NCBI GenBank assembly: GCA_964270895.1
Contig: OZ185435.1
Direction: 5' to 3' (one strand)
Source: Podarcis filfolensis
Lineage: Eukaryota
Length of the DNA: 64,000 nucleotides
Part shown: piece by piece, positions 3,501 through 39,097 of the stretch
Position numbering within the stretch: position 1 is the first letter of the stretch
Layout of the letters: each line of letters starts with the position of its first letter
The notes under the pieces: generated by a model
What the model saw: only the letters and a program-made list of their open reading frames with translations
Told to the model about the DNA's origin: nothing
Database searches by the model: none
Position numbers and translations under genes: made by a program

Positions 3501-6500
3501 TGAACTGCGATTGCTCAAGTAGGTGAGCAGAGTTGATAGTGGACTTGAAAGAGGAGCTTGAAGAAATCAGTTTTCGTGCTGTCCAGTGGAGAGTGAGAGG
3601 CAACAGATATAAGATTGGGACCTGAGAGTGCTCTGGATCAGTTGGCGCTGTGTGTGGATGGCTGAGGTAGAGAAAGATGGTTTTTGCAGAGATGTTGGAC
3701 TAAATATGTGCCTCTGTCATAGAGACACAATCCTCTACTTATTTCATTGCCATCAACAATTTAAAAAATCTGTTCAGTGGTCTACATTAATTCATAAGTG
3801 TATTCATTTTCTTTGTAGAACTGTGTCAGCTTACCACAAAACAAAGAACATGTTGGATTGTGGATAGTCTCATTTCACTTGAGCATCCTAATTGTAGAAT
3901 TGAGTTTGATTCACTTTGCATCATGACATACCACTTATACTTGATCCTGGCAGGTCAGGTTTACTCTATAATCTCTGGCTGTAATTCAGCAAAGTGGTTC
4001 TATATACAAAAGTAGTTACAGTGGTACCTCTGGTTGCGAACGGGATCCATTCCAGAGGCCCATTCGCAATATGAAAGGAACGCAACCTGCAGCGGTGCGG
4101 GTGGCGATTCGCTGCTTCTGTGCATGTGCGTGACATCATTTTGCGCGTTTGTGCATGCGCACGTGGCTAAACCTGGAAGTAACCATTTCCGGTACTTCCG
4201 GGTCGCCGTGGGACGCAACCTGAAAAAACGTAACATGAAGCAAACCTAACAAGAGGTATGACTGTGTAGTATCTTACCTGCTTGGAAGACTGTGCAGATA
4301 TTGTTCTCTAGTCACTATAGTTGTGTTGAAGGAAGTCTAAATGTTTTCAGTGGAAGTTGTCTTTTGTGGAGCTTTAAGATTTTCAAAAATCTATTTCCCC
4401 CTAGTACAAGTACAGAGACTTGACTGTTCAGGAAACTGTCAGTGTTATTACCCAGTACAAAGACCTCAAGCCTGTAATGGATGGATATGGTGAGTTTTTA
4501 TGTTATGTTTTTCTTTTTTGTACAGTATTTTTGTTAGCTAGCCTATGTCGGTTTCCTATCAGTATATCATACTGTATTTTGTGTAAGAAATTTTATGACA
4601 AAGAAGAAATAAGATAACTTGTTAGACCAGGGTAGCTAACCTGGTGTTCTCCAGATCTTGTTAGTCTGCAGTCAGCCTTAGCTAGCAAACCCAATAGTCA
4701 GAGAAGATTTGAATTATAGTTAAGCAAGATATGGAGGACCAAAGGTTAGTCACCCCTGCACTGTGCTAATTATTTGAGACATGCTTTTTGGCAAAATGGT
4801 AATAGGGGAACCTTTTCTTCCAAAGCCAATGATCAGGGGTGATGGGATTGTAGTCCAGCAACGTCTGGAGTACCACAGCCACCCCTCACTTGACTTGGAC
4901 ATAGTATTGCTCATTTTTAGGCTTTGCTTTGAAGGCTGACAACTACAATAGCAATGTTATGGCAGCTTTATTTTTCATAGATGCTAGAATTGTATGGAGC
5001 AGATCTGCCTGTCACACAATAATTTGCTCACCATTTCTTATTGTGTGGTGTTGTTAGTTCATTTTCCTAGAAGATGCTTGCTTCTATATAGAGAAGTGTT
5101 TGAAAAAAAGTAGTCTCTGAGATTATACTGTATATCTGTTTTGTCAAGCATGCACACAGTTTTTGTTATCTGACTATAAAATGAACAGGTTGCATAACAC
5201 TTTTTTTTTGCTTTTCAGTTTTTAATGATGGTTCATCAAGAGAACTGATGAGCCTCACAGGAACCATTCCTGTAAATTACAAAGGTATGTATTTGTCTTT
5301 GGTAGATTGCCAGTACATTACTTGAAAGCTTACATCATTTACTTTGATCAGCTTGGTCACTAACTTGTTCTGAATGCTTTGTTCTTAGTTTTGGACCTTT
5401 GTACAACTGTTTTGTGTTGCCACATACAGGAGGTTTTCCTATTCTTTGTGCAGTGTCCAACAAAGTTTTTTCATTAGCACAATGTGTGCAGTGGAATTTC
5501 CCCCTCCCTTCTCGTACCCTGGGAGAGGGGCTCAAGGAGACTTCCAGAACAGTGGACTGGAGGGCAGCCTGCTTCTGTTAGTGGAGGTTAGAAGGCCTTC
5601 CATCACTACAAGGGCAGCTTTTGTAATCATTCCTATTTCACAGCATTAAAATATATTGTCAGAAGGAGAAAATAATAATGCTTTCATCTTTTCTTTTTAA
5701 ATAACTTCTTCAGGTAACACATACAATATCCCAATATGTCTGTGGCTGTTGGATACATATCCATACAATCCACCAATCTGTTTTGTTAAGCCAACTAGTT
5801 CAATGACAATTAAAACTGGGAAGCACGTGGATGCAAATGGCAAGATATACCTTCCATATCTACATGAATGGAAACATGTAAGTACAATTATAAAATTCTT
5901 AACTATTAGCCCTAAATTATTTCACCATTTAAGTAGCAGTTTTGTTTAATATTCTTCTTTCTCCTTTGGTCATTTGTTATAGCAGAAAGATGTGACATTG
6001 GGAAACTGGGGTCTCTATTGAGTAAAATCTTAGCACTCTTACATAGTACTAATTGTGTTACTGCTTTTGTCATATTTGATCTCCGTTCATGAGATCTGCA
6101 ATTGAAATGTGGCCTGCCGTAAAATGTCTAATTGCTGCTGATAATTAATATGGGGTTAGGGTTCATATTCTCATTAGTACTTTCTCAGTGATATGCTACA
6201 CTTTTAATTTTTATCAGTTAGTGATTGCACCTGAATTGGAATATACTTGACCAAAACCTACAAATAGAGTAATGAAATGACCACCTATAACTGACAAGGT
6301 GATGGATGCATTGTCATTGTTAATCTTTGTGGGATTAAAAAAGCAAAGAGATTTTTATATGCTTTCCCCCTTAGCCACAATCAGATTTGATTGGCTTGAT
6401 TCAAGTGATGATTGTGGTGTTTGGAGAAGAACCTCCAGTCTTCTCTCGGCCTACCATTTCAGCAGCCTACCCACCTTACCAGGCAACAGGACCACCAAAC

Positions 6501-9500
6501 TGTAAGTACCTTGTACCCCATATACTTGCAAGTTGCAATGAAAACAAGTAGAATAATGGCACGGTGTATTGTTGAAAAGATCTAGTTATTGTAGTATTGG
6601 TTTCTGAATATGTAGTTATGTTGTTGGTTAAAATACAAAGTATCTCTGCTGCCAATTGCCCATTCCAGAGCACAAGTTGTATAGCCAATATTCATTCTGT
6701 GTAATCTTTTTCAGCTACCAGCAGCTCTGAGTTTGGTTTATTTAAATGTAGAGAATTAGGCTAGATATTTTGAACATGCTGCCTAATAACTGTTTTGATT
6801 ATAAATAAATTTCCATGAAAGATGTTGTTTTTTAGCGCCCACACTACAATCTCAACAACATTGCTACAATTCATTTGATCCTTGATCTATTTTCAAACAT
6901 TATTTATGCTAATATTTTGCCATTATCAGTACCTTTATCTTCATATGTCATTGTTTATGAAACTTATTTATTTTATAATGCTAGCACAGTTATATTGGCA
7001 TCCTTTATACTATTTTTCTGTTAATTGCAAATCAAATTAAAAACTCGCTTTGGTATCTAATTTTTGAGTATCTAATAATGACACTTTTATGTTCCATTGC
7101 TCTCAACTTCTGAGAAAAAGATGTTCCTACAACTGTTAATTATTTTGCAAGAATTTACTGTGCTATTTTACAAGATGTGTAGGGCATTTATTTGAAATGT
7201 ATACTTATACCAGTTTGAAAACTGGTATTATTGTAGGGAAATTCATTTTATAGAACACAAACCTGTCATTGTTAGATGTACCAATGCTGAACACTCAAGG
7301 AAAGTTAAATTTGCTTTCTTTTTTGCCATTTTAGCATTGCAAAAAGCTTTCTCATTGTACAGTACTTTTTACCACCAGAGAATATCATCTCTGCCAGTAG
7401 GTGTCAGCCAAATATAGAATAGCCAGGAGTTTGACTTCAGAACTAATAAAGCTATATATTGCCAGCTTGATAGTAACACTGATACTTTGACACCATCACT
7501 TTAAAAATCATAGGTAGCTGTCCTGGTCTTCAGTGGGGGTGGAGCTGTGCAAAACCACAGTTGGGAAATAGCTTCATTAGGACCCTTAGAAATGTAATAT
7601 TAATAGCAAGCAAGTTTTCAGGTTCTCCAGAACTCTTCATTGCACTGAATGTAGAGTTGGTGCAGTGAGAGATATAAGATAATGGAGAAAGCCCCAAAGT
7701 GCAGTCTCAATTGTCTTAAATTGGAGTGTGGGATGTGCTACTTATACTTAATGAATGCAAGGCACACATCACATCTAATTGATTGATTTCTCCCTCGTGT
7801 CCCATCTTGGACCACTCCAGAAACTCCCCAAATTTCAGCTGATTTTTGGAAGGGGTGTAGTGAGCTGCAGCGGGGAGGAGGGGGCAAGTGGACCTTTTCC
7901 CTCGCAATTCTGGAACCAACTCTATAGATCCAGCTCTTAGTATGAACATTTTAATCTTTATTATTAGATTAATCGCTTCATTTTAATAATGGCTTGCTTG
8001 TAAGGACTCCCTGGTTATATAGGACTGGATTCAATTAAAGTACTAAACAATTGTACTAGCAGGAGCCAGTGGAAGGACTCCCAGTAGCACAGCAGGATCT
8101 CCCCACACTATCCGCTTTGGGAGGAAAAAACCCCAGACTGCAGGAGGAGAAGAGGGGAGATTGTTCTGTCAAGCAAGCAAAAACACTTGCACCAAGGGAA
8201 CAATTGAAATAATGTGATGTTGAATTCCACCTATGGATTTGAATATGTGTAAGGAAAAAATGGGATAAAGGAACACTCTGAATTGGCTTATGCAGCAAGA
8301 GTAAAGTAACTGAAATGCATAATAAGTGCAAGCACAACAGGGAAGACTAGGAACAGGAATGGTTTCCTGGGCTGTTGTTTGCTTATTCTGAAGGTGGGGC
8401 AGGGTTCAAGAAGACTTCTTTTTTCTTTCCTTCTGCATTTTCTTCATTTGGGCTATTAAAAAATAACTTTTACAACTGTAGAAATTACATCAATAGTTGA
8501 TGTAATAGCATCAATAGTTGTCATTCTATTAATAAAACAGCTGCTTCTGTTCCAAAAAGGGACTGAGGTTCAGTGGAGACTTGGGGAAGTGATCATTGCC
8601 TCTTGTCTCAGCACCAACTTCCATGGTCTTTGCCTCTTCCTTTTCCCCCAGAAGGTTTCTGCTCACAGGAAGTTTGGATCTAATCTAGTTGGTTGTATTC
8701 AACTAAGTTCTACTCAACCCATTGAAAGAAATAGACCTAAGTTCATTAATTCCATTCATTTGGTGGATCTACCTTGAGTTGAGGCAACCCAATTAATTTT
8801 TAACTACTTATTTGTAAAGATAATTTTATAATTGTACAACACTATCCTAAATTGTTAAAATGTTTGAAATTGTTGTTGTGCACAGCTTCCTATATGCCAG
8901 GAATGCCAAGTGGAATGCCTCATTTCCCTCCTGGACCACCACCTAACCCAAGGTAAGCTATGGTTTGCTGAATCTGCTGATCCAATAGACTACACTGGCA
9001 ATATTGGACAATGTGATGTTGTGCCCATTTCTGAAATTGAGAGTGATGGACTTTAAAAGCATTAGATTTGTATTCCATTCATCTTGAGTTCAGTTTTGTC
9101 TGGGTGTTGAGTCAGGGTCTTTTATATGTTGTTATTTAAATACAGTCATCAAAAACCCTGGTTGCATTTAAGGTCCCTTCATTTGGGTAAAGCAATGATT
9201 AAGTGTATAGTGAGCAAAATTGGTGTCATTGTAAACCTATACTTCTAAAATGACTCACGTTCTTGCCTTTTTATAAAACTTTTCAGCTTGCTTCCTGCAT
9301 TCTTAACATTATTTGGCTGCATAATCTCCTGATGAGAGCCCTTTTATATATAAAAAACCTAGGCTTCCCATGTTCAAAGAACACATGTAGGGGGGTGCAC
9401 AGCTATGGATGTTTTTTTTCTGTCTCTGATGTCTCTGTTCCCTCCAGCTCATCCCCCAGACCTTTGTGCACTGGGCAGAAGATCTGTTGGGAGAATGTGT

Positions 9501-12500
9501 GTAAGTTCAGCTTAATGCACACAGGCTCCTCCACAAAATTTGCATCCACACATCCACAGAACTCCTAGTTACATGGAGGAGCCTGTATACCTTCTGCTGA
9601 ACGTGTGTAAGTTTCCCCTTCAGACTTTCTGCCCAATAAGTATAAGTCTGAGGGTGGAGCCAGTAATAGACAGTGTGGGCAGTGGTGGTGGAGCAACTCC
9701 AAAACAGACCTAGGATTAGAACCCAACATACTGGAGCAACTGCTGCAGCCCATGTGTTCTGGCAGGGCCCCAATGGAACTGATGCCAGTCTTGCTATCAC
9801 CCCCATTGGCGCTCTGCCTGGCATTTCCACCACCGTTGGGGTCTCTGTCCAATGCACCAATCACTACCCTCCACCAGCAGGTGCCATTTTCATATGGGAG
9901 CCAAGCTACCACTCAAACTCCAGTCCGTGGTGGGTGGCCACCATCTCAGGACCCCCAAAATGCAGTGCTCACAAACAGGCATTGCATTTGGGGTCTCTGA
10001 GATGGCAGCCATCTGCTGCTGAAGATCAGAGCTGAGTAGTAGCCTGTTTTCCATCAAAAACACCGCTGCCATCTGCTGGATAAGCACAACCAGAGGGAGT
10101 GAGAAATGACTGGTGGCAGCAGAATTGGTGGGCAGAGTGGCCAAGGGAAGACACATTGTTGGGCAGGGGAACTGAGAGAGGCCCAGTCTGAGAGTCTACT
10201 AAAATCTAACACCAACCTTGATATAATACACTGCTACCTTTTGCACATGTTCTTTTAATGTATGGAGACAGAAGAGGGCTGAGGACTGCTTTATTTCTAC
10301 ACATCGGCTCATTTTATCCCTTTAGTTGTTGGCTAGTGTTAGTACAATGAATTAAACAGTAAGGCTTGTTCACAATAGACACAGTTCTGAGTGTAGAAAT
10401 CCCACACATGTACTGTATTGTATCTCCCTTTTTCATATCCTGTGGTGGTATTGTCTCTAGTTTCCTACTATTGATGGCTTATTAGTTCTGCCATCACTAT
10501 ATGCATTATATAACTGATTCTGAAAATGGAGTGCATGGCACCAACTGAGTGGAAATAGAGGGCACTAACTTTTGAGGAAAGTAACATAGCATGCAGAAAC
10601 TCTAAAATGTGTACGTTCTCTGGCAGTTGGAGGAGCCTGCTCAATCTCCCCTCTGTAAATGAAACCACCAAGGCAACATAGACCTTTTCAAATGAAAATA
10701 ATGCAACAAAGTACAAACCTGTTAACTGCTAACAGAATGAACCATGAATAATTAGACTGAGTGCCTCTACCTGTCTTCAGCTTTAATCCACAAATGTGAA
10801 GAAACTTTGATCAGGGAACTTGAAATTTATTTATACTTATTTGAATAACATTGATAAAAACATTGATACCTCTGAAACCTATGGATGACAACAAATTTCT
10901 GATAGGCTTGAATATTACTCTGACTGTTTATATCTGCATCAGTGGCTCTTTTTTAAATTCTGTTTGTCTATTATAAATTGTTTAAATGTAAAAAAAAATT
11001 GCTTATGAATGGAAATATTAACTAAAGAATGCATAACACTGTGTCTTTCTCCCCCTCCCCTTTCAAGTGGTTACCCAAGCTATCCTTACCCTCCCCCTAG
11101 CGGATCATTTCCACCAACAACTAGCACACAACACTACCCTTCTCAGCCTCCTGTAACCACTGTGGGTGAGTAACTTTGAAAGTGTCTTTTTCCGAATGTA
11201 ATGAGATGGCTCATTCAAAATATATAGCATAAAGCAAATCCAAATACACCTATTTCTAAGATGGGCATTAAGTGCCTCGTGGCAAAAACATCAGTTATTT
11301 TACACTTTAACCATGCTAGATGTTCATTTTTTTCTCCATTGTTTGATTTATGGAACAATCATTAACTGTTTTCACTGTTCAACAAACTTCATTTTTATTG
11401 AACTGTTTTATGTAATGAAGTTCACATGTGTTTGAAAATATTATGTTTGCAGGTCCAAGATAAATTAAAGCCCGAAGGCTTTTTTTTTTTTAAGCCTACA
11501 TATTTATTATGTTCTTATTAACTGGGGGAATGATCTTGTAGTTATGAACTTTTCAATGATGAGAAAAGGGTGGGTTTCATTTGATCACACCACTGAATGT
11601 ACCAGGAACTTGAACAGCAGCATCATTTGGGCACAAGAATGAAGAGGCATGTAGCCAGTGTGGAGTAACTGCAGTCCAAGAGGCAGTACTACAGCCTATT
11701 TACAAGCCTTTTGCTATGTCAGCCAAAGATGGAGAATAGTACCTAAGGATGATGTGAACTGAAGAAACCTTGATTGCTGTCGGGTCAGTAGCACTGAAAA
11801 TACAGTTGAGTTCCGTGCTTAACTGGAAGCGAACCAAGCTATCCTTGACTCCATCGTGTTTTCCAGTACACTCCCAAACTGCGATTCCCCCCCCACTCTT
11901 TTTGTGTGTGATGCAAGTGTAGAAGTGCCGTTCATGAAGTAGCCCAGCTACCATCACCAGATCTTCATCTTGTGAAGTTTGTTGATCTGTAAGCTAAAGG
12001 TGCCAATCAACAGCTTTCTTCAGTTTCGTGTTCAGTGTAATTCTTGGGTGCTGAAATGCTTGCTCACCTGTGTTACTACTTAGCCCAGAACTACCAAACC
12101 TGTTCAGAGAAGTCCTAAGAATCTGAAAGTATTGTTGCCTCTAGTGATAAGCAAAAACTTGAAAACCCTCAAAAGAGTATAATTTAGAAAGCACATTATT
12201 ATTTAGCACAAAGACTGCAAGATCCCTGACCACATCATCATCCACTGTTTTCTTGTCCAATGTCACATAGAATATATTTGAACACCAAAAATTACCATCA
12301 CTTTTGTTGAGCTATTACTATTATCGTTGTTGTTATTTTACAGGTCTATAGACTGCTTCAGAGCCATATGCTATTGAAGCTATGTACAATAAGATCAAAT
12401 ACAAAAGATGCAAACTCTAAAAACAATAAAACCATTTTTACAATTATAAAATTGACTGGATTGCATGTCAGGAAAAGACTTCATAAACAAAAACAAGTTG

Positions 12501-15500
12501 AAAATTGAACGGAGAATGTAAAAATGATAATTTTCTGTAGTTTAATACTGGAGGTCTACATTGTTTAGAAGAGATCAAATTACTATTCTTTCAGGGCAGT
12601 AATAGAAAATCTATCCCTAGTCCAAGCTTTCTAGCGTTTTGTTCAGAAAATGAATTTTTAGAAATGGAGGTGTAATGTGGCAACAAAAATTAATCCTGTC
12701 AGGCAAAGTGTGGAAATGGTTACATAAATTTCTACATAAGATTTAATAGAGAAGTATAACTCTGCTCCCTGGGCTTTCTTAACAGTCGAAGCTTTCTCTT
12801 CTGCTTGAAAGGTATGGACTTCTGCTCCTGACCTTTTGTTAATTTTGGAAAAAAATCTGGAAGAACTTCATTCTGAGTAGAGCACATCTATCAAACCTAT
12901 ATACTTTATCAAGATCTAAATGGATTGTTAGCAACTTTATTTAGAAAAGATATTTTCACTTGCTCTTGTAAGATTGATCAAAAGGGTACATGGGCATGCA
13001 TTCCTTTCCATTGATCTTATAACTTGCATACAGGCATTTTTACCTGTAAACTTTACACACCAATCTTCAAATAAAGAGTTGACTTTATGGATTATTATGC
13101 CATGTATTTTAAGATAGAGGTGTCATGTTTTGATTTTTACATGGAATAATTCAGACAACACTGAATAAAGTTTTCAGGAGGTGCTTGGGCCACAAAATTT
13201 ATGAAGCATTAATGTATGTTTGTTCTCTTAATAGCAGATGGCAGAAGAAAGCAGAAACAGGTATGGATATGTGGTCATTCTTACGTTTTCTGGGCAGAAA
13301 AAAGAGCACTTGAAAGAAGCTTTGGCCCACAGTTGGGCATTCGACTGGAGGATGCCAAACTACATTGGCTAGGAAAGAGTGGCATGACGTGGGATCAGTT
13401 GATACCCAGCCTATTGCACACACGGCGGCGTCTAACAGATCCTGATATATTGGTGGTCCATCTAGGAGGAAATGACCTTGGGACATACGCAGATTATGAT
13501 ATCATAAGACAAATGAAGAAAGATATAATACATATTAAGATAACATTCAAGAACAGCATCCTTGTCTGGTCTAATATTGTACCCCGCAAAGCATGGAGCC
13601 AAGATATGTCCCATGAATTTATGGAGAAAAGCAGGAAGAGAGTAAATCGGGAAATCGGCAGTTTTATGGAACGTATTGGAGGGATTATAATCAAACACGA
13701 TTCACTTGTCCCAGAATCTCCAGGATTGTTCCATCTAAATGGTGTTCTCTTGTCTGAAAGTGGCACAGATGTCTTCAACATGGATTTATTAAGTGTTTTG
13801 GAGACTTTGATCTAACTTTTTCTTTGGAGAAGGAATAATAGATTTCAGTTTAAGCAAGTATGGAAGGTCTCTACAGACAGAGATTATTAGAAGGTTGTGA
13901 ACGGTGGTAATTTGAATTTTCAGGCAGTGGAATTGCACTGTTAATATGGTGGTGGGTATTAATTTAGTAATGTAATTGCTAGTGGCATTGTTCTGCAACC
14001 ACTGCAGTAAGACATTTGCCGATATATTTAACTGTTTGTTTTTTTAAAATTCTGTTTACTTCCCCACCCCCCTGAATTCAGTTTGCTTCTACAGTGTGCT
14101 TAGAGACACTGCCAAGCAGTTTAGTTTCCCTGATTGATATTCCCATCCGAAAAATGCTCAGTGAATAGCACGAGGTGATAGCTACCTAAAATATGGGTGC
14201 AGTAATAGCTTACAAAGCTATTTTATGTGGGTAGATCAGAAAAAACATCATAAAAAATATGTAACTTTGGAAAAGGTGAGTCTGACTAGAGCAGGAAAAC
14301 AAACTGAAGCATTAGGGCTTCATTATACATGGACTCACATGTTACTCTAGTTATATGTTAATCACTTATGCTTCATGAGTGTTTATTAACATATGGCAGG
14401 CTCAGAGGTAAAATTCTTAATAAACCATAGTTCATTAAGCAAGAATAAGCATCAAGCTTATTCCTGCCTCCCCATGTGTGCCAGGTTCAGCCCAAGCTGC
14501 TTTTAAGTCACACTTTCCTCTGAAATGGGGAATTGAGGTTTAATACAACTTTGCAAATCAGATTTCAGATGCTGGTTAGTAAATCAACATTAAACCAGTG
14601 CTCCCAATTTCAGACATAATGGGAAACTGAGTTAAAGAGCCTGGGCTCAAAGTACTAAAACCAGCCTAAACACCAGATGCTTGCACCAGATGCTCCTTCA
14701 TGGCTTATTCAACCAGGAATGTCACATCCAAAATCCTATATAAGTTTTAGACGCTGAAAGTTTTAAATGTTACTCTGCAAGACATTCATTGCAAAAGATC
14801 ATGACTGCCCAGAGCTATTATGGCACTTGTTAAAACTGTGTGAAGGTACATATTCTGCTTACCTCGAAGCTTGTTGAACTGTCTGACAGTGACTGTATGA
14901 CAGTTTTGCCACGTTTTGCTTTGGCATTACTGTGTCACCTTTCCTGGAAAAAAAGGCAGATCACCTGCATCAGAATTTGCTTTAAAAATACAATCTAATA
15001 GAATGACCATTTTTCACAATCACTGTTAGTACTTACTAGGAAACAAATTACAGGGAAGCATATGCTTTTTTTATTTTAAAAGAACCCTGCCGTGAACTTG
15101 ATTATTCTTAAGGAGAGTTGGTTGTGAATGAAGCCACATAAGACAATATCCTTCAGTGTTTCGGTAGCACATTTTATGTAAATTCCTTTTATGATGTAAT
15201 GTGCCTTTCACAAACGAGAGAGCTTAACTTCAGTGGCTTATTCACCTTCCCAGCTTCTCTGAAATCAGGTCAATATCCAGATGAATTCTGGATTCGTTGG
15301 TATTGTGGTTTTAAATGGTCAGTACTTCCAAATATGATATCAATCTTGTAGGTTGATGTTGGAAGCTAAAATTTAGCACAAATGTGATTCTGGAATGCAA
15401 GGGCAACAGGAATAGAATGTAGCAGACAGATATTGACTAGACTTGAACTTTACTGCAGTTTAAGATGAATGCTTGGATTACATTTATATTTTTTTACATA

Positions 15501-18500
15501 ACCTCTCTTTGCATACCACTCTGGAAATTTCCCACTAGATTGGGGGAGAACTATATAGCCTTTGGGAGGGACAGGAGCAGAATTCTACATGTTTATAGTG
15601 CGGTCCAGCTCATTCCCTTAAGGACATGGCAGGCGCTTACTGGTGCTTACAACTGACTATAGCCTTCATTTTGAATACTTGCTTGTAGTAGGGACGTTAA
15701 GTTCCAATATGGATCTGGGCCTATCTTTTCTACCTTTTTGATGTTGGGCAATGCTGTTTGATCCATCTAATTTGTATAACTTGGAGATTTGTGTTCTAAC
15801 AATAAAATACTAGTATTTATTTCTTAGTCCTTACATTCTTTGTTAGCGAACACTGAATGATGCGAATTTTTTTTATAAAGACAATTGAGGAAAGATGTTC
15901 TTTGGGTTGCTAATTGTACTTGTTGAAACACTTCTTGATTCAGCCCACAGTCAAACATCCCAGAAATGGTGATACTTTCCTCAGCTATACTTAGGTTGTA
16001 TAAAAATAGCGTGTTTAAGTAAGCTACTACTACTCATAATTTTATTAAAGCAAAACTTTCAAGAGCTGTTGCTATCAGTAATTGGTGACCATTATCTGCA
16101 TGAGGTAAAAGTAAAGCTTTGGATCCAGACTTTGTCTTACATAAGTTGAAAGGACTTCTACTTGTACTAAGCAGCTTACCGATCTCCCCCTTCAACTGCA
16201 TTTCCTCACCACCCATCTCATACTGTTCTTGAGGTTCCCTCTACTCTCAAGGGTGGTTTTTTGGGAGAATGCAAGGGAAAGCTTTCAGGCAAAACAGTGT
16301 TGCTTTTTGGATCCATGGTATTCATTTTGTTGGGGCTGTTAAAATTTAGTTACCACTGCTGTTGAGTACTATATATGGTTTACTTACGGTTGGTATATAG
16401 TATTTCAAGTATATTGCATGTTTATGAATGAGCAACAAATATTAAGTTTGCTTTTATATTTTCATGTTAGCTCACAGCGTCTCCCTTGCTTGCACATCTG
16501 TACGAACAAGGTGGCCTTTCAGAAATCTTTGTTCTTGTTGGAATACTCCAGTTTCTTGGGGAACTGGAATATAGCAGTGAGCAGAGCAACATCTTCCACA
16601 GGGTCTCTTTGATTTGCAGACTTAATTAAGCTTTGGGGGGTAAGTAGCAGTTATATAATTAGAATGGAATCCCCTAAAAAGACTAGTAGAGATGGATATC
16701 AGGGTTCATTCTTCTTAGATTTCTTTCCGTAAATATATTAACATTCAGGTGTTCAGAGTTCACTTATGTTATCATGGAGCAGGATCCCAATGCACAAGTG
16801 AAAAGCACTTCTACTGGGCAAGAGGTGGAATTTCCTTCTGATGGAAATTCCTTGCAGCTCATGGGGGCCATTACGGAGGGCTCTCCAACCTTGGCTGTTG
16901 GGCCACTAGAAGCAGGGTCTGAGAAAGAAGAGACCATAGCTCAATGAGCAGATATTTTGTCTGCTGAAGATGTGTCAGGTTAAATTCCTGGCATTGCCTG
17001 GTAAAAGGTTCAGTGAAGATTGACCCCAGGCTGATATCAATGTTCTTTCCTTTCAATTTTTATTCTCAGAGAATGTTTTTTTTGCTCAAGAATATAAGCT
17101 GCATATTAAGGGTTTATGGCAGTATTAATCTTAAGGTACTTAATTTGTGGGGTGGGGGTGGAGGTTACTACCTTATCTGAAGAAATGTCTTACCTGAAGT
17201 TCAACTAAACAGAGGCCTAGTAAGGCAGTATTTTCTGGAAGTCATTCAAACTGGTTATAGGGCCCCCAGCTGATGGACTTCCACAATGTATTAATCCTTT
17301 AAAATGGACTGTCTACTCTGGCAGTTCTGATACAGCTAAAGCAATTTAGCCTGTTTAATCTTGCACTTCCATCTTTCAGTGTTAATATTTTGTTTGACAT
17401 CATACCCCTCCTGAAAAGTCAACTGAAAAGATAATTAAAATTCTTTTCTAGTTAATAATTGAGGAATACACCATTATTACATGTTACATTTCACATTGTC
17501 CTGCTGGTGGTGATATATAGTCATCATTATTAAATTAAATTAAACATCAGTTTCTTCCATTGCCAAGTTGATATTTGGCTGTTTCTTTTCTGTCTGAGTC
17601 AACTGCTAGTCTGCAGTACTATAAGGTCAGTACCATAAGGTCAGCTCTGAAACTAGACTCTGTATAGCAAAGGTTAAATGTCTGAGTTTTCCCTTGGACG
17701 TATGGCTGCATGCCAGGAACTCTTCTCTAAGGGTGGCTAATTATGGAAGTGATTGAAAATGTTAAGGGTTCATGTTCTTGAAGGTGCTCTTCAAATCAAG
17801 TGCTCCTGGTATGAATTGGTATACGGTGGTAGCCTGTCTTGTTCTCTGTACATCTAAAACCATATATTTGTACATGCAGACTTATTTCTCTGACTTTATT
17901 TAAGCTCTAGACAAAAGCTTCATAAATAAACAGCTTTGACCAAGAAGTTGTAACTGGTTCTAAGATATATTTATATGATATATGCTTATGGTAGTTAGAA
18001 AACTGGGGCATGTGGAAATGTGGGTCTAGCACTTGAATAGGATTTTGTTTTGCTGGCTTTTTCAAGATCATTTTCTGGATGACCATATAGGCTGATAATC
18101 CTAAATTAGCATTGAGTAGACCCGCTGAAATAAGTGGTCTTAAGTCCATTGATCTAAATGGGTTTACTTCTGAATGAGTAATATTTGATATCACCCATAG
18201 TTGCTTTGAACAGTGTTTACCTTCCTCTTTAGCACAGCTTACTCAGTTGAGCCAAGTGGTTTGTTCGTTTTGTTCAGGTTTTTCTTTTTTGAGGATTTTC
18301 TTTTTTTGCTGTTGCCCAATTTTAATACAGTTTCTGAAGCAGGGGATTATCAAAATAAGGTTAAGTTACTTTTTGAAACTGCCTTCATGATTTTCTTACT
18401 CTGAATAATTCGTTTTAAACAGGACAAGTCTAGACAGTAGTAGAAGAAGATAAAACCTGGTATGGAAAACACAGAAATGGATAGTTTCAGAACAGAACCT

Positions 18501-21500
18501 TCATTTATTTTGTTGAAACTGTTATCTAGATCATTCAGAAGAAAACGATGCAACATGTTGCAATTTAGGACCAATTTCTGCAGTAAACTCTTGCGTGGAG
18601 CTGTCTTCAGGCACAGGAATATGCAACAGAGGGTGAATGGGGAAAACACTTAAGAGAACCTCATTAGTGATTTGAGATGGTACTTGAAATTCAACCAAAA
18701 GTAGCCCTTGCTCTTTTTATTAGGAGCAAGTGTAAGTGTGTGTTTACTTGATGGATAAGGGGGCAAAATATGCAAAGCAGTCTTCAGGCACTTGGTGCTG
18801 CATAGCTCCCAAATAATGCAGATCACCTGTCAAAAGCTTTTGTTATCACTATGTTGTGGAAATGGGCTCTACACATTTTCATCTGCCCGATCTACCAGGC
18901 TTCCTTGGAATTTGGCAATGCAGATAATCACATGCTGACATCACTGCAAACCTACCTTAAGTCTGCCAGAATACTTGTTTTCATTTGTCCTACCACATAG
19001 CTAGTCTGGTCTTAATCTTTTAAAGGCAAACTTTGATGAATTCTTAAATCAGTTGAGAGGGATTAAAGGGTTACATCTTTTGATGTACATAAACATATTT
19101 GCTTAGATCACTTAAGTTACACTCCTATGTTTGGCTAGTTAAAACGTCTGAATGTTTGCAGTTCACTCAAATCACCTGAGATTATATTATAGAACGTCTA
19201 CTACATACTGTTTTGCGTTGGGTCTTTTCAGTAGTTGGGACAGCACTTGATGACACAACACATTCCATGGTGCCCCTCTAAAGCTAAAAGAATATCAAAC
19301 AATATCCTGGCTTCCATCTCTGTTTTAGCTTGAATTATACTTGTTTTCTTGTTGCACAAGTATTTGAATAAATGTTTTAACAACAAGCTATGTTTTTATA
19401 TTTAATGAGAATATGGCTTGTTTTAAAAGCAACGCAACAACAATTTGTTCTAAGGATGTTGGCTCTGGCCTTTGCTTATTTCTTAGCTGTCATTTTGGAA
19501 CCTGCAGGAATTTGTTAACATGAGTTTTGATGCTTTTATTTGGGCTCGCCTTACAAATTGTATACATCTAGCAGCATGTATCAGCGTAACTGTCTGTATG
19601 TCTGTTCATTCTTCAGAAATATGCATATAATTCAAGTTGAAACTGTTAAAAGTTAAATACCAGTAATGATGTAATAGTGGGAGGCGTTTTTGGAGGTGTT
19701 GGTATTTGGAGATTTTCCAGGATGTTTTGGGGCCCCTTGTCCCATAAGAATGTCTTATTAAAATCTGTATTATTATACATTTAATACAATAGAAAATTAA
19801 TAATTCCAATCTTTGGAGAGGTGTTTATGTTTTGTTTTTGGGATAAAAGCTTCATGGGGGGAACTCAGATGATATGCAAATGTTTAGAATCAGAACTCTG
19901 AGTTGTAATAATGTTTTGTGTTCAAATAATTTTTGGTTTAAATTGCTCAACATTTGTTATGCAGAAGGGTTTCTTGATCTGACACCAGTTTTCAGTGTTC
20001 CTTACATATGATACCACGCCTATGCATACTCAAGAGAAGAGCAGAAAGACTTTAGGGAGCAATGATCAACATAACGGACATTAGCGTCAGACTTTGAACT
20101 TTGTTGGACATGAACCCAAGACAAGAATGGAAATGAGAGCAAATAAAAATAATCTGGTCTTCACTGAAATTGGTAATTGGACTTTAAAAGCATTGAAGAA
20201 ATGAAATTGTGATACTCATCCGTCATGAGTTTTATTCTGAAGATAAGAAACTGATATCCATTTAACGAAAAGAAAATGAAAGCAGGAAGAATGAAATACT
20301 GAAAATGAATTCACAATGTATCCTCATAAAGTGAAATCCCAAGTCTGGAGTCGGAAGTTCCAATCAGAGACTGTGATTCCATAAAGTTGTTTTGGCGTGA
20401 AGATCCCCCAGTGTGAATGAAGCAGCAGCAAGACAGAGCGGATTCAGAAAGAACAGCATGAACAGTCGTTTTCCGTACTTTGCTTACTTTTGCTGAGTGG
20501 ACAAAATTGCTGCAGGTGGGCTGGTCAGGAAACTGCTGGGATGGACCCATACCATACTTTCTACATACTAAGTGCTATTTGGGGCAGTGGGAACACCTCA
20601 AAAGCAAAAAGAATGGACTGATAATTGTGAAAGAGACTGTAAGAAGAAGAGTTTTAATGTTAAGAGAACACATGGATGGCGGCAAATTCAAGCTGCATAT
20701 GAAACCTGTGGGGCTCTTTGAGTTGGTGTGTTAAGGTAAAATACAATTTTTATACTAGAGTGCTGTTGCTAATTCTTGCTAGGTTTGATATAATTGTGAT
20801 GTTTGGAACCTACACAGTTTATTGAATACTTTCTTAAAATATATTTGTAGATTAGTAATGGTAGTGATTAAGACAGGGCATTCATTTTTATAAAATTTCA
20901 AGTCCTCAATGTAAGGAAACTCTTCAGACAGTGTTGTCTGTGAGGAGACAAGTGAAAAACTTGTAGATTTGAATGTGCAATGTGAATTAGTGGATGTGAG
21001 TGTTTGGAAGGAAAGGTTTTAATAAGGAAAGACCATCTTGTGCATGGCAAACATTTGGGGTTTCATGTGAACTTGGTGATAAAAAATGACTGTAGATATT
21101 TTATATGATGGTTGATGCAAAAGCAAAAGAAATATTTGTATTAAAAATAAACTAGTGTTTCATTGTTTGTAGCTCAACTCAGTGTTCCTCAAACAATAAC
21201 CAGAGCTAGTAATCTGACAGAAGCATTCTGTGTTTTCATTAAAACATTTTGAATTTGGGGGTGTATCCAAAGTAAAGTTTGAGTGGCTGAGTGGCCTGTG
21301 TTCAAGGACGATGTTTTTTCATTGTGATAGTTAGCTAATGTGTTAGTTAGCTAACACTTGAAAGCTCTATGGTTGCTTTTAAAATGTTTGCTGGTTCAAG
21401 TTCACAGTTGCACTCTGTGAGAAGATGGGCAGAACCTCCTTAAGCTGGGAAAGTGCAATAGATTATTAAGCAACTTAGGAGTTCATGGGTACACCTTTTG

Positions 21501-23922
21501 GAATGTTATGTCTAAAAATTAATCTGTTTTAACATACTCTAGCTTTTTTAGCCTCAAATACCTTTGCAAACAGATTGTCATGACCTACAAATCTCAGAGG
21601 TAGAGGGGGTTGATTCTGTGACTGAATCTTATTGTACAGGTCCCAGCAGAGATGGCACCATTAGCGAAGATACCATTCGAGCTTCGCTTATTTCAGCAGT
21701 CAGTGATAAGTTGAGATGGAGAATGAAAGAAGAAATGGACCGTGCCCAGGCAGAGCTCAATGCCTTGAAGCGCACAGAGGAAGACTTGAAAAAAGGTCAC
21801 CAAAAGCTTGAAGAGATGGTAACTCGCCTAGACCAGGAAGTGGTAAGCAAACGAAAAGGCTTGTCATTGGGTTCATGACTTCCCATGTCTTTTCAAACAA
21901 CAACGAAGCATTTTTTGTTGCTCAAAGCAGCTGGAACATTTCCTTCCTTGCAGTAGATTCTGCTGCCTGTAGCTCTTGGCATCCATTGTGTGGTAGGTAA
22001 GGCAGTTATAGGAAATGAAAAATTTAGCCCTTTTCTTTTTAGCCATCTATTCCTCACCACTGATTCATTATTTGCAAGTGGGGATAGTGGTCTTAAAACT
22101 GCAATTATTACAATTATTTGTCCTGTGTCTATGGTTATTTACAAGGTCAATAGCACAGGAATGGTAAAATTTTGAGACCATCCAAATAAGCAGTTAAATG
22201 CTGTTCTCGTACATAAATACTCGTAAAATGTTACGGAGCAATCCTACTGAGGCAAAGAAAATGCCACACCCAAAGTCCTACCGGCCTTACGGTGGCAGGG
22301 CAGAAGGTGGTCTTGCAGCACCCGTCCTGATTTTTTCCCTTTTGCATCTACCTTGTCCTTTGCCCACTCTGCCTACCGCCACAGTTTCCCAATTAGTGCC
22401 AAAAGGACAGGAAACTGAGTACACCAGCTTCAGGACCATGTACTCCCCCCCCCCCCGCCATTCCAGAAGTATGTCATGGGAACAGGAGAGTTTGGGATTC
22501 AGTGGATCCCAAGTTTCCCCAGACACTTTTTTTGCCATTATTGCCCTCAGAGCAGTGTGGGGGTAATTTCTTCACATGCAATGGGAGATGTTTGAGGGCA
22601 GGAGGGAAACCTCTTTCTTGTGGTACCTGGAATTCCCTTCCATGGACTTTAAAATGAAATTTAGGGTGTTGATTAAATAGGTATCAAGGCATCTTAAAAC
22701 AAACCTATAATTTTATTTTAGGCTGAAGTTGACAAGAACATTGACCTCCTGAAAAAGAAAGACGAAGAGCTGAGTTCTGCCTTGGAAAAAATGGAGAGTC
22801 AGTCAGAAAATAATGACGTAGATGAAGTTATTGTTCCTACAGCGCCACTTTACAAACAAATTCTGAACTTGTATGCTGAGGAAAATGCCATTGAAGATAC
22901 CATCTTTTACCTGGGTGAAGCATTGAGACGTGGAGTTATTGATCTTGATATCTTTCTAAAGGTAGGTTTGAGTAAATATTCAAAGGTACGTTCATGCAGT
23001 TTTTTTCTGGTCCACTGAAACCAATAGTTATATACCTAGTTCTTAACTCTAATGCCTCTTCAAATGTAGGGAAGAGGGGAGGGTTTTTCAAGTGCATTGG
23101 ATGGTACCAGAGTGTGCCTGTTGTTATTGCTCTCTCACATCAGCAAAACTGTAGTTTAGAGCCTTACACACCTGACGGCCAGGAAGATATAAGCCTGTAG
23201 AACAGAATAACTTGTCTTCCCATGGGTGTGTGTAAATATTCTTGTTGTAACAGGTCTGAGTGAGGTATTTAATGCACTGCCTGGTCAGGTTTTGTGGGAT
23301 CAGTTTCAGCTTTTAGGTTCTGAAGACGTGCTTGTAGCTGTATGGCCAACCAAATGCCCTCTTTACCTTTTCCCATTTTGGCTAATTCACCCACTGTGTG
23401 GGTGACTGCATGTGTCTAGTAAATGGTTTCTGAAGCTTTGGTCTTCAGCTGTTGTTGGACTACAATTCCCATCATCCCTAGCTAGCAGTACCAGTTGTCA
23501 AGGATTATGGGAGTTGTAGTCCAACAACAGCTAGGGACCAAAGTTTCAGAAACACTGGTATATGTTACATGCACCATTACACAAAGTTAATTTATAAGAA
23601 TCTAAAAATGTCAAAATTTACACCTTCGAAATTATTGGGACATACAGTCAAAGAGAAAATGCCAATCAAAATGGTATCTTACTTTTCAAGTTGTCTTTAA
23701 ATTCAAAATCTGGACCTAAATATTCATTTATCAGTAATAAAGATACTCCATTGAAGTTGATCAAATTAAAATGTTATAACTGCTGTCGGATCATGCTCAG
23801 ATGATTTACCCTCGCCTGTTTTTTCTTTTTAGCATGTCCGCCTCTTGTCTCGCAAGCAGTTTCAGCTGCGGGCACTTATGCAGAAAGCAAGAAAAACGGC
23901 AGGACTCAGTGATCTCTACTGA
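134..23922 (+). CDS. TSG101: Tumor susceptibility gene 101 protein (ESCRT-I subunit, Vps23 orthologue), whole spliced CDS, 393 aa
   Basis: join(134..175,4405..4489,5219..5284,5714..5877,6375..6501,8886..8952,11068..11165,21640..21842,22722..22961,23833..23922)=1182 nt. All introns GT..AG, phases compatible. Translation [22 protein letters not shown]...[11 protein letters not shown] matches vertebrate TSG101 (UEV, proline-rich, coiled coil, steadiness box). Confidence 0.98.
1637..1870 (-). mobile_element. L2-type LINE 3' fragment with (TAA)n tail
   Basis: Minus-strand peptide [17 protein letters not shown]...[13 protein letters not shown] resembles the L2 ORF2 C-terminus; (att)n tail at 1637..1665. 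Confidence 0.75.
1886..1997. repeat. Old short dispersed repeat (gagttcagtgggacttactcccaagtaa-like core), unclassified
   Basis: Related copies by eye near 35875..35960, 44250..44330, 47335..47410 and 54590..54660. Confidence 0.45.
4019..4264 (+). mobile_element. Tc1/mariner (Tigger-like) MITE
   Basis: TA|cagtggtacctc ... gaggtatgactg|TG imperfect terminal inverted repeats; upstream TA target, downstream TA apparently mutated. Confidence 0.7.
4405..4489 (+). CDS. TSG101: TSG101 exon 2 ([28 protein letters not shown])
   Basis: ctag| acceptor, |gtgagt donor, 85 nt. Confidence 0.97.
5219..5284 (+). CDS. TSG101: TSG101 exon 3 ([23 protein letters not shown])
   Basis: ttttcag| acceptor, |gtatgt donor, 66 nt. 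Confidence 0.97.
5714..5877 (+). CDS. TSG101: TSG101 exon 4 ([54 protein letters not shown])
   Basis: cttcag| acceptor, |gtaagt donor, 164 nt, UEV core. Confidence 0.98.
6375..6501 (+). CDS. TSG101: TSG101 exon 5 ([42 protein letters not shown])
   Basis: ccccttag| acceptor, |gtaagt donor, 127 nt. Confidence 0.97.
8886..8952 (+). CDS. TSG101: TSG101 exon 6 ([22 protein letters not shown])
   Basis: cacag| acceptor, |gtaagc donor, 67 nt, proline-rich region. Confidence 0.95.
11068..11165 (+). CDS. TSG101: TSG101 exon 7 ([33 protein letters not shown]), ends in phase 1
   Basis: tttcaag| acceptor, |gtgagt donor, 98 nt. Confidence 0.95.
13238..13815 (+). CDS. Transposon-type SGNH/GDSL hydrolase-like frame (192 codons from the acceptor); candidate alternative terminal exon of TSG101
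   Basis: SGNH blocks: VWICGHSY (I), WLGKSGMTW (II), [12 protein letters not shown] (III), degenerate FHLNGVLLS (V; consensus DGVHLS). No stop or frameshift to TAA 13813..13815. Preceded by tttgttctcttaatagcag acceptor in phase with TSG101 exon 7. The domain call is well supported; the exon role is inferred. Confidence 0.75.
14419..14424 (+). terminator. Intronic AATAAA, candidate poly(A) signal for the SGNH exon
   Basis: First AATAAA I found downstream of the SGNH stop (about 600 nt); hexamer only. Confidence 0.3.
21640..21842 (+). CDS. TSG101: TSG101 exon 8 ([16 protein letters not shown]...VTRLDQEV, coiled coil)
   Basis: tacag| acceptor, |gtaagc donor, 203 nt. Confidence 0.98.
22722..22961 (+). 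CDS. TSG101: TSG101 exon 9 ([10 protein letters not shown]...VPTAPLY...DLDIFLK)
   Basis: ttttag| acceptor, |gtaggt donor, 240 nt; internal PTAP motif at 22836..22847. Confidence 0.98.
23421..23557. mobile_element. Palindromic hAT-type MITE in the last TSG101 intron
   Basis: Same core (ggactacaattcccatcatccctagctagc...gggagttgtagtcc); 5' limit approximate. Confidence 0.75.
23833..23922 (+). CDS. TSG101: TSG101 exon 10, terminal ([29 protein letters not shown])
   Basis: tttttag| acceptor; TGA at 23920..23922. Confidence 0.98.
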   Translation, partial: HVRLLSRKQFQLRALMQKARKTAGLSDLY

Positions 23923-25391: not shown

Positions 25392-36393
<11,002 letters not shown>

Positions 36394-39097
36394 CTTGTAG
36401 CTCTGTGGGAGGAAACATAAGAATACAATCAACTCATTTTCATCACTTGTTGAATTGTGCTGTGATGATAAGTTAACACAGTCCATTTCAAATATGGATC
36501 CCATCACTAAGATACACACACCACAGAGTTTACTCTGCAAATTTGCAAGAACCTTGATTTTGCTTGAATTGTTATTGCAGTATTTGAATTTTAGCAGATT
36601 CTTCTGTTTTCACAATGGGAACAAAGTCATGAGTAAATTGCCCATTTATTTGCATGGGATCCAAGTTCAATCAACTAATTTTAGTGTGGATCCAACCCAC
36701 GGTTGGCACATATGTATCATTTATTTCCAAAATAAACATTAGAAAATTTGGCAGGGTCATTGCAGGTGAGAGACAAGAGGTTTTCAAGAAGTGGAATGCT
36801 AATGTACACAGTCAACACAAAACCACACAGTATCTTATCAAAGGATCTTGCAAGCTCAGTGCATTGTGCAACAAAACATCTTGTCTGTTTGATCAGTATG
36901 CTTTCAGGCACAAAGTCTACCCAGGATGTGATTGAGAACTAAAAGATGCGACTGACTCACTCGGAAGTAGTGAAACACTTTGCTCTTTGTTCTATATGCT
37001 TGTCTTAAAGTTTTTATTTTATTTCTTAAAGATGTATGTTATGTTTTGCTTTGTTAAAAGCTGTCTTGGGAGAGAACAGCATATAAAAACCATAAAATAT
37101 TAGGCAGCATATAAAAATCATGAAATATTATGCCATACTCTGATGTTCCAAACTCTGATGTTGTGGCCACAACAACTCTGGAAATGGTGTAGGTGACAAG
37201 AGACAATGAGGCTTGGACTGAAAACTGGCAGCATGGCAGGTGAAAATCCCCAGGAGGACAAAGGTTGATTCTGGATATCACGTTGGGCCCAGAGTCCAGA
37301 GCTAGAAGCTAGTAGCAAGTCAGGAATATACAAAACTTGGGTAGTACCAGCAAGGGGTAGGGGTGCATGCCTGCCAATGCAAGAGCACAATAGTGAAAAT
37401 AAAGGGGTCAATATAGCAGATTAGTGGTCAGTGTTGCTGGAATGAAGGGGCATTTCATGATGTTAAACTTTGCAATTAAGACTGTCAGGCAGTTCTGAAT
37501 CAAATTCTGCAACAAGCCATTGCCATCTCAATTTAAAGTTGGTGAACCAAACTGGGGGAGGGAGTATGGCGCAAGGGTATGGCATAAAGGCACACCTGCT
37601 TGGTGGGAGAAGGCTGCTGAAGAGGAGGAAAGATGCCCAACAGGACTGATGAGGGAGGGCACATTGAAGGGATATATTGGTGGGCAGAGTTTGAGAGAAG
37701 AATGTGGAATGTAGATTCTGGAACACTGACAGCAAGGAGCTAGGATGACAGATCTCAGAACCAGTCATTAAAAGATGGGCTTCCAAAGCTCATGGGATAG
37801 TCAGCCATACACCTGTAGTCCAAAATTATGACAATTCCTGCATTCAAAGCTGCCCCATGTAGAACAACTGCAAGGGGGGAAAACCAAAAAGTCTGATCTC
37901 TCCTGGGTGCATCACTTCAGTGTCATCTGATATGCAGCACTCTGCTCAGTTATGCTCTTTGCAGAAATGATGCTACTGCAAATGTGGAAATTCTGAGCGT
38001 CCCTACTGAATATATTGAATCAGAGTTACTGCAGGTATTTTTGTTGCTACTATATGCAGCTGTTCACTTGGTGGCTAAAGAGCAAATCAAGGCAAGCACT
38101 CTCTCTCCACCGTGACCATCAGCACTCCAGTTTGGTGATCAGTAAGTATTTGGAGACATTTGTGACAATGAGCGAGTTTTGCAACAAAACAAAACCACAA
38201 CTTCTGAAGCAGTAGCAAGTGAATGACCTAGCAACTTCCCCATAGACTAAAAACAGCTGCTTATTAGTTGCCAATAATAGTGTGAATTAACAACAGTGCA
38301 GTTCAGAGTGAGGCACAAGCAAGATTCATATGCAGTACGTACATTAAGCTCCACATCGTTCCAATGAAATTGTAATTTTTTTCATCTGATCAGCAATTTT
38401 GCAGCATCAGATACCTTTCCTGAAATCGAAAGACACATCTCTATAGGCAGAAATGTGTCATGCAGAGTGTAACAAAACAGGAATACTATTTTTTGCATGT
38501 CTAATTCAACAAGCAAAATGGAAACCTAATTCCACTGCCCTGTAGGGGCCAAGGTCACAAGGGCACATTCTGACATGAAAGGGCTCTGGCATGTGGGTGG
38601 TATCTGATGAAGAAGCTGAAGTCAAAGGGAATCTGCATATGTGATGCTAGGAAAGCCATGGGGGGTTAACATGCACCTAGATTTACAAAATTCAAGATGT
38701 TGGAAGAAGGAAGGGGAAATCTGGTAAATCATGTTCCTGTGACCAAACACAGGACAAAAAGCGGAATATTATTAGAACTTGGTACCAGTGGCACACTTCT
38801 GGAGTCATTTAAAGAAGTATCATACCTCTTTAAGCAATCATGGCTTCCCCCAAAGAATCATAGGAACCATAGTTTGAGTTCTGAGAGTTCCCTTCACTCT
38901 GGGAGTTGTGGCTGTGTGAGAATAGGGGTCTCCAATCAACTCACAGCAGCTTTAATAAACTAGTTCCCTGAGTTATTTGAGATAAGCCATGACTGTTTGA
39001 AGTGGTATGATACTGCCTTTAAAGGTGAGATGAGGCCTTGAGTCCAATTCACAAAATCAAACTCTTACACTGAACCATGTGCGTCCACATAAGCTGG

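Follow-up and report, generated by a model that had tools for sequence, protein, structure and literature searches.

Analysis of a 64-kb window of the Podarcis filfolensis genome (64,000 nucleotides [nt] of contig OZ185435.1, assembly GCA_964270895.1; the whole stretch of DNA analyzed here) indicates that TSG101, the gene of an ESCRT-I subunit, very probably has an alternative 3'-terminal coding exon. This exon spans 13235/13238–13815, together with a 3' untranslated region (UTR) to ca. 15.8 kb, and encodes a domain of the SGNH fold. The donor at 11165 is sometimes spliced to the tandem acceptor at 13235/13238 instead of the exon at 21640. The predicted product consists of the UEV domain, the proline-rich region, and a 192-residue SGNH fold, without the stalk and the Vps23 core ("steadiness box") of the canonical protein. 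While the explanation as a whole is held at that level, we are slightly more confident still in the structural and evolutionary statement on the isoform, and the functional reading given at the end is far more tentative.

TSG101 runs on the + strand of the window, with the UEV exons at ca. 4405–6512 and the last exon near 23839; the features below are on the same strand unless stated otherwise. The exon that encodes the end of the proline-rich region (here exon 7) was placed at 11068–11165 from the sequence and from RNA read ends at 11064–11067 and 11165–11167. Its 3' end reads CCT GTA ACC ACT GTG G|gtgagt at 11165, giving a phase 1 donor. The canonical next exon (exon 8, 21640–21839), where the coiled-coil stalk starts, begins with GPSRDGT, and the canonical loose end of RNA reads leaving the exon 7 donor translates to PSRDGT. 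The intron of 10.5 kb between 11165 and 21640 hosts the SGNH-fold frame, and the acceptor at 21640 and that at 13235/13238 are competitors for donor 11165.

In this intron, an intact open reading frame (ORF) of 199 amino acids (aa) extends from 13216 to 13815. It is one of only two ORFs of at least 199 aa in the window, and the chance of 199 open codons was ca. 2e-6 per start by our own estimate, which assumes ca. 6% stop codons at the local base composition. At the start of the frame lies a 3' splice site composed of a branch-point-like TTAAT (13209–13213), a polypyrimidine tract (13219–13232), and a tandem NAGNAG-type acceptor, AGCAG (13233–13237). Both acceptors are in frame with the phase 1 donor: AG 13233–13234 yields the 409-aa form (G+CA = Ala, then Asp), and AG 13236–13237 yields the 408-aa form (G+AT = Asp). 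The coding part of the exon, which corresponds to the SGNH-fold domain, occupies 13235–13812 and has 192 codons, plus one Ala codon with the upstream acceptor. The junction peptides of the isoform are ...PPVTTVADGRRK and ...PPVTTVDGRRK. The stop codon TAA is located at 13813–13815, the same position in all orthologues. Because this TAA sits in the last exon, nonsense-mediated decay is not expected for the isoform. A first-pass annotation of this DNA had described an uninterrupted SGNH-like frame on the TSG101 strand, a complete 3' splice site before it (TTAAT, pyrimidine tract, "atagcag"), and a phase 1 exon 7 with which both AGs are in frame. All of this agrees with the sequence, and the domain assignment with the Pfam, AlphaFold2, and Foldseek results described below.

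Two raw RNA-seq runs and two contig sets from a close relative, with reads that deviate from the window by no more than a few percent, were aligned to positions 10950–15949. In the stranded bulk run X23, the joint 11165^13235 (GT..AG) was found in four reads with four different starts and no more than 58 nt on the shorter side. The same joint was found in a 7994-nt contig of run X1, which belongs to a second study. The canonical joint from 11165 to exon 8 was found in 80 reads of X23, and the SGNH-exon joint accounts for roughly 5% of the use of donor 11165 in this sample. All X23 reads over the SGNH exon have the orientation of the exon 7 reads. The read depth was 0–5 in the intron before the acceptor, ca. 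7–19 at 13121–15792, and 1.8 after 15793, with an approximately tenfold rise at the acceptor. The first-pass annotation had proposed the junction 11165^13238, with 13235 as its alternative. Splicing of the isoform was borne out, but the reads use 11165^13235, which gives the 409-aa form, and not 13238; the databases list both.

Judging from the RNA depth, the 3' UTR would cover ca. 2 kb (13816–15825). The AATAAA at 15801–15806 is likely the main poly(A) signal, where the transcript would terminate; it lies in a block (15664–15829) conserved with two lizards and one turtle, and the read depth falls just after it. The 3'-biased single-cell run showed peaks at 14290–14623 and 15459–15792, and AATAAA at 14419 and ATTAAA at 14589, near the peak of this run, are possible proximal poly(A) sites. 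At 14953, eleven RNA reads of the relative diverge into a common unmatched tail, with small indels nearby, which suggests that the 3' UTRs of the two animals differ by an insertion or a rearrangement.

The chimeric isoform is also represented in protein databases. RefSeq and UniProt contain a 406–409-aa product from dozens of species, mostly named "TSG101 isoform X1/X2" and often present as a pair one residue apart. For example, residues 214–409 of XP_042302597.1 (409 aa, "tumor susceptibility gene 101 protein isoform X1", Sceloporus undulatus) match the frame of the window. Further isoform entries are XP_015744717.1 of Python bivittatus, XP_019407292.1 of Crocodylus porosus, XP_038620734.1 of Tachyglossus aculeatus, and XP_023593445.1 of Trichechus manatus. 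The predicted 408/409 aa, the shorter of which had been given in the first-pass annotation, is the exact size of database proteins. The junction peptide is identical in them, ...PPVTTV(A)DGRRK, with both acceptor forms listed. The question raised in that annotation of whether the isoform is already annotated thus has a positive answer: the sequence feature is present in RefSeq/UniProt as unreviewed automatic predictions without a described function. None of the models among the matches comes from the species of the window, although their architecture, junction, and length are the same as those of its isoform. We found no publication on the isoform among open-access papers and preprints.

The taxonomic spread was determined by an exhaustive representative search, cluster look-ups, and a region-restricted search. 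The chimera occurs in many lizards and snakes, at least 15 turtles, Crocodylus, Alligator, the echidna, six marsupials, two manatees, and one tenrec. The exon is much older than the first-pass annotation had taken it to be and is not confined to squamates but amniote-wide (turtles, crocodilians, a monotreme, marsupials, and afrotherians). No human or mouse chimeric isoform turned up in the searches, and no bird, amphibian, fish, or boreoeutherian chimera was found in the word-based search, a result to be read as "not found" rather than "absent". A Logan ORF of 217 aa (P0090) resembles the exon in a decayed state: its residues are of the eutherian type, and the frame shifts after ca. 130 of them. 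This ORF hints that the exon was lost in some placental lineage.

We compared the window with eight other loci (Carettochelys, Sceloporus, Python, Sphaerodactylus, Mauremys, Crocodylus, Tachyglossus, and Trichechus). In all eight, the frame lies on the TSG101 strand upstream of exon 8 and ends at the same stop, with a length of 192 codons (193 in the crocodile); the SGNH part is 71–81% identical to that of the window. The 3' splice site is likewise shared by the nine loci, from lizard to manatee and echidna, which have CATTAA(T/C), including the branch-point-like TTAAT, the pyrimidine tract, and an identical "aatagcag". On the other hand, the ATG at 13216 is found only in squamates and is missing in turtle, crocodile, echidna, and manatee, where the acceptor stays. 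Therefore, the conserved feature is the 3' splice site, not a start codon. In blastn comparisons with the five non-squamates, similarity around the exon was confined to a span from 13202–13207 to 13817–13819, which contains the splice signals, the frame, and the stop.

The ratio of nonsynonymous to synonymous substitution rates (dN/dS, ω) was estimated with the GY+F3X4 model for a set without marsupial DNA. For the SGNH exon, ω was 0.24 at a tree length of 3.7 substitutions per codon, and for the canonical exons 8–9 it was 0.013 at 3.9 substitutions per codon. Pairwise dN/dS of the SGNH exon was 0.06–0.47, its tree agrees with the species tree, and 86 of its 192 residues are invariant in 15 orthologues. 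As judged from these codon comparisons, the SGNH exon is clearly under purifying selection at the protein level. The first-pass annotation had inferred an exonized, possibly domesticated transposon-type domain. This reading is supported, the frame being orthologous and intact in nine amniote loci with a conserved acceptor and this ω.

The assignment of the frame to the SGNH fold is based on both sequence and structure comparisons. The frame matched Pfam Lipase_GDSL_2 with an E-value of 3e-4 and 21.7 bits, which is below the gathering cut-off of 32.9; most of the retroelement paralogues tested were likewise under this gathering score or had no match. An AlphaFold2 model built on a 65-sequence alignment (pLDDT 94.7, pTM 0.91) showed a three-layer alpha/beta/alpha SGNH fold, and Foldseek aligned it with GDSL lipases, TesA, and PAF-acetylhydrolase Ib at probability 1.0 and a TM-score of ca. 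0.7. A single-sequence search of solved structures gave nothing meaningful, only a chance match with an E-value of 0.1. With a family profile, the best solved structure was 4C1B (E 7e-8), the esterase domain of ZfL2-1 ORF1p. In P0019, an orthologous isoform, Pfam detected UEV plus GDSL_2, and the UEV domain of the orthologous isoform matched with an E-value of 7e-50.

The conserved blocks of the family were then located in the frame. Block I, CGHSY with the nucleophile Ser15 (13279–13281), is invariant in the 15 orthologues, and GHS is likewise found in the paralogues. The oxyanion hole is formed by the Gly of block II and the Asn of block III, which lie in LGKSGM and HLGGND, also invariant; the residues concerned are Gly46/49 and Asn79 (13471–13473). 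Block V reads (D/N)GVLLS in 15 of the 15 orthologues, so that Leu171 (13747–13749) occupies the position of the catalytic His. Residue 168 (13738–13740) is Asn in the window and Asp in many species. Among 182 paralogue domains, the blocks are G-H-S, G, GGND, and D-G-V-H-L-S, with DGVHLS present in 129–153 of them. The residues that are invariant specifically in the TSG101 clade cluster at the block V loop (V158, P159, S161, H166, L167, L171, and S175), and conservation within the exon is highest at the C-terminal helix and in the regions around blocks I and V. The SGNH domain is probably a pseudo-enzyme, because the catalytic His is Leu in every orthologue and the Asp varies. The "esterase" of the first-pass annotation is accordingly better named a pseudo-esterase. 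We read the pattern of conservation as suggesting that the former active-site cleft was remodeled once, early, and then kept as a binding surface.

A search for SGNH relatives yielded 1697 representatives at E ≤ 0.001, most of which were 25–43% identical. The nearest relatives of the SGNH domain of the window are those borne by retroelements, and the closest paralogues are 35–43% identical to it. In the tree, the 15 TSG101 exons group as a single clade (support 100/99) with a stem of 0.48 and short internal branches, nested among the paralogues. The nearest paralogue with a retrievable context (P0028) belongs to a caecilian element (L009), in which a 559-aa frame and an RVT_1 frame precede that of the SGNH domain. 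This one examined paralogue context, with SGNH after the reverse transcriptase, is unlike the arrangement of ORF1 of long interspersed nuclear elements (LINEs). PMC9210276, citing Goodwin and Poulter 2004, describes an SGNH ("Hydro-SGNH") ORF 3' of the reverse transcriptase in Ngaro-like elements. From its gene order, the caecilian element may tentatively be called Ngaro-like; the label is tentative because no tyrosine recombinase was detectable by Pfam in the decayed pieces of the element.

The SGNH ORF of Ngaro-like elements of the DIRS order belongs to the same domain family and has the GHS...GGND...DGVHLS blocks. In contrast, the frame of the window is an orthologous single copy within a host gene, and it lacks a reverse transcriptase, a tyrosine recombinase, split direct repeats, and the catalytic His. 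The esterase domain of CR1/L2 LINE ORF1p (ZfL2-1, 4C1B) has the same fold, is the best solved relative, and offers a model for a non-catalytic role. However, it is distant from the domain of the window, enzymatically active, and located behind a coiled coil in a retrotransposon protein.

The SGNH exon does not lie within a mobile element and occupies a single orthologous position in nine genomes. As the first-pass annotation had observed, no element surrounds the frame: a repeat search of the intron detected no terminal or inverted repeats bracketing it, and no reverse transcriptase or other transposon-like frames were found around the exon in the window. We infer that an SGNH frame of a retroelement was captured once, in the stem lineage of amniotes, more than 300 million years ago. 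Separately, several predicted proteins of 1300–2040 aa (P0027, P0030, P0031, and others) have cold-shock (CSD/CSDE1-type) domains and a C-terminal SGNH domain that is 41–43% identical to that of the window. Their SGNH domains form a tight, well-supported clade, and these proteins may represent a second host-gene capture or a fusion of gene models.

Other explanations of the frame were weighed against the alternative last exon. The frame could be a gene in its own right inside the TSG101 intron, driven by a separate promoter and starting at the ATG at 13216, so that a free SGNH protein of 199 aa is produced. Products of this length are listed by ORF callers, NCBI has "uncharacterized LOC" models of 220–230 aa in two turtles, and contigs of run X5 follow the genome colinearly through the acceptor. 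Conservation begins only ca. 33 nt upstream of the acceptor, though, and the ATG is restricted to squamates; turtle, crocodile, echidna, and manatee do without it and keep the branch site, the tract, and AGCAG. With the exon 7 junction reads and the dozens of models that join the frame to TSG101, we set this explanation aside as very unlikely. A neutral DIRS/Ngaro or LINE relic, open by chance or youth and spliced as noise, would suit a domain family that is transposon-borne and an exon used in only ca. 5% of joints. It would not suit a frame that is orthologous and intact, with the same length and stop, in nine amniote lineages, nor flanks that are unconserved and free of repeats and reverse transcriptase, nor a gene tree that matches the species tree. 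Orthology in nine loci, the confined similarity, and ω of 0.24 rule out a young neutral relic, and we assign next to no probability to a neutral relic of any kind. Junction reads are present, the ORF is neither disrupted nor evolving at a dN/dS near 1, and the flanks are not those of a young multi-copy element; the first-pass annotation had named the opposite of each as speaking against its claim.

The remaining two alternatives concern what the exon does. It could be mainly regulatory, an early terminal exon whose own poly(A) site lowers full-length TSG101, with the protein as a by-product. TSG101 levels are tightly controlled ("steadiness box"), a single donor is contested by this exon and exon 8, and a conserved block surrounds the poly(A) signal in the 3' UTR of the exon. 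A purely regulatory role would not require that 192 codons stay open over more than 300 million years, nor the low ω, the 86 invariant residues, and a confidently predicted globular fold, and we consider it highly improbable that regulation is the main role. The domain could also be an active hydrolase with a non-canonical base, such as the clade-specific invariant His166, or with a Ser-only or Ser-Asp mechanism. In its favor, Ser15, Gly46/49, and Asn79 are invariant, and the remodeled block V loop, which is better conserved than any other part of the exon, is likewise invariant in the 15 orthologues. Against it, all 15 orthologues have Leu in place of the canonical His, and the triad Asp alternates with Asn between species, which would not be tolerable in an active triad. 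Activity is thus unlikely, although less so than the regulatory role.

Several observations weigh against the alternative last exon of TSG101 and the pseudo-enzyme that it would encode. The ω of the SGNH exon is ca. 18 times that of the canonical exons 8–9 (0.24 vs 0.013). The isoform is dispensable in large clades, as far as the absence of bird, amphibian, fish, and boreoeutherian chimeras among the matches goes. Separate-gene models of the frame exist, namely, LOC142014737 of Carettochelys (230 aa) and LOC123368998 of Mauremys mutica. The RNA support is thin: it consists of one contig and four junction reads, with no long read among them, and comes from a close relative, not from the animal of the window. 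The evidence for the isoform is drawn from DNA, RNA, and gene models. A non-canonical catalytic arrangement, for example via His166, retains some probability. Nevertheless, junction reads in the RNA and RefSeq/UniProt models with the same junction agree on a chimeric TSG101–SGNH isoform, as the first-pass annotation had proposed, and the alternative last exon is the explanation that we retain.

Other features of the window were recorded. The intron after exon 7 contains conserved blocks at 17575–17975 and 19930–21170. The part of the former at ca. 17.6–17.8 kb matches lizards, snake, turtle, and crocodile at 70–82%. The latter, a 1.2-kb block directly upstream of exon 8, matches squamates at 67–70%, and its core at ca. 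20.6–20.8 kb also matches turtle and crocodile. In the preceding intron, a GC-rich island at 9600–10200 (52–55% GC vs ca. 35% around it), which contains a 120-aa ORF (9673–10035), is probably an interspersed repeat. The longest ORF of the window (208 aa, 30101–30727, - strand) has no Pfam match. At 36151–36540 on the - strand, opposite to TSG101, an ORF contains the N-terminal exon of lactate dehydrogenase (LDH). A TSG101–LDH neighborhood is known in vertebrates, and this ORF is consistent with it.

What the isoform might do can be considered from its domains. In TSG101, the UEV domain binds ubiquitin and P(S/T)AP motifs, and the proline-rich region carries the CEP55 site. The coiled-coil stalk and the Vps23 core, which bind VPS28, VPS37, and MVB12, are encoded from 21640 onward and are skipped by the alternative isoform, because its stop at 13813–13815 lies in its own last exon. 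Since TSG101 without the stalk and core cannot join VPS28, VPS37, and MVB12 in ESCRT-I, the isoform would be unable to assemble into this complex and would retain binding to ubiquitin, P(S/T)AP ligands, and CEP55. The ZfL2-1 ORF1p esterase domain is active and binds acidic phospholipids and liposomes (PMC3905857). By analogy, the non-catalytic SGNH cleft might act as a module that binds a ligand, with acidic lipids or membranes as the most plausible candidates. In that case, the isoform would be either an adaptor that brings a free UEV to membranes independently of ESCRT-I or a competitor of full-length TSG101 for its ligands. This functional reading is possible, but we do not regard it as probable.

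PMC5478143 states, citing Demirov et al. 2002, that UEV-only TSG101 fragments block PTAP-dependent virus budding. Such N-terminal fragments (UEV alone, "TSG-5'") resemble the isoform in having the UEV without the ESCRT-I assembly region. They are laboratory constructs, whereas the isoform is natural and conserved, retains the proline-rich region, and carries an additional folded domain at its C-terminus. Another comparison is provided by UEVLD (UEV plus lactate/malate dehydrogenase domains), the TSG101 paralogue that adjoins TSG101 in mammals. In UEVLD, which arose by duplication and fusion with an LDH gene, the UEV is linked to an enzyme-like domain where TSG101 has the ESCRT-I core. Unlike the isoform, it is a separate gene and not an alternative last exon, and it is not transposon-derived. 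The route by which the exon would have arisen is already known. Cosby et al. 2021 reportedly described host–transposase fusion genes formed by alternative splicing to a captured transposon frame, with SETMAR as an example. There too, an intronic transposon frame comes into use through a newly gained acceptor and provides a host protein with an alternative C-terminus. Those fusions capture DNA-binding transposase domains of DNA transposons and yield transcription regulators, whereas the isoform has a retroelement SGNH domain on a trafficking protein. What is new here would be such a domain on an ESCRT-I subunit, as old as the amniotes and probably catalytically dead.

TSG101 ranks among the most studied trafficking proteins for its part in ESCRT-I, in the budding of HIV and Ebola, and in cytokinesis; the work has been limited almost entirely to human, mouse, and yeast. 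The significance of the present finding is limited by the RefSeq predictions that already exist and by the low usage in the one sample examined. In a broader and more speculative proposal, to which we give still less weight than to the functional reading above, most amniotes, apparently not birds or boreoeutherians, would have a second TSG101 protein that works outside ESCRT-I. Its dead SGNH cleft would have been rebuilt as a ligand or membrane module more than 300 million years ago. The protein might be a guard against PTAP- or SGNH-bearing proteins of retroelements or viruses, or a lipid-directed UEV adaptor in sorting or cytokinesis. A link of ESCRT to esterase-bearing LINE proteins has been discussed previously (PMC5478143), and a natural TSG101–esterase fusion would make this link directly testable. 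The isoform also raises the questions of whether a module of the UEV and the proline-rich region can act outside ESCRT-I, why the exon was apparently lost in birds and most placentals, and what age and stability a retroelement domain captured by alternative splicing can reach.

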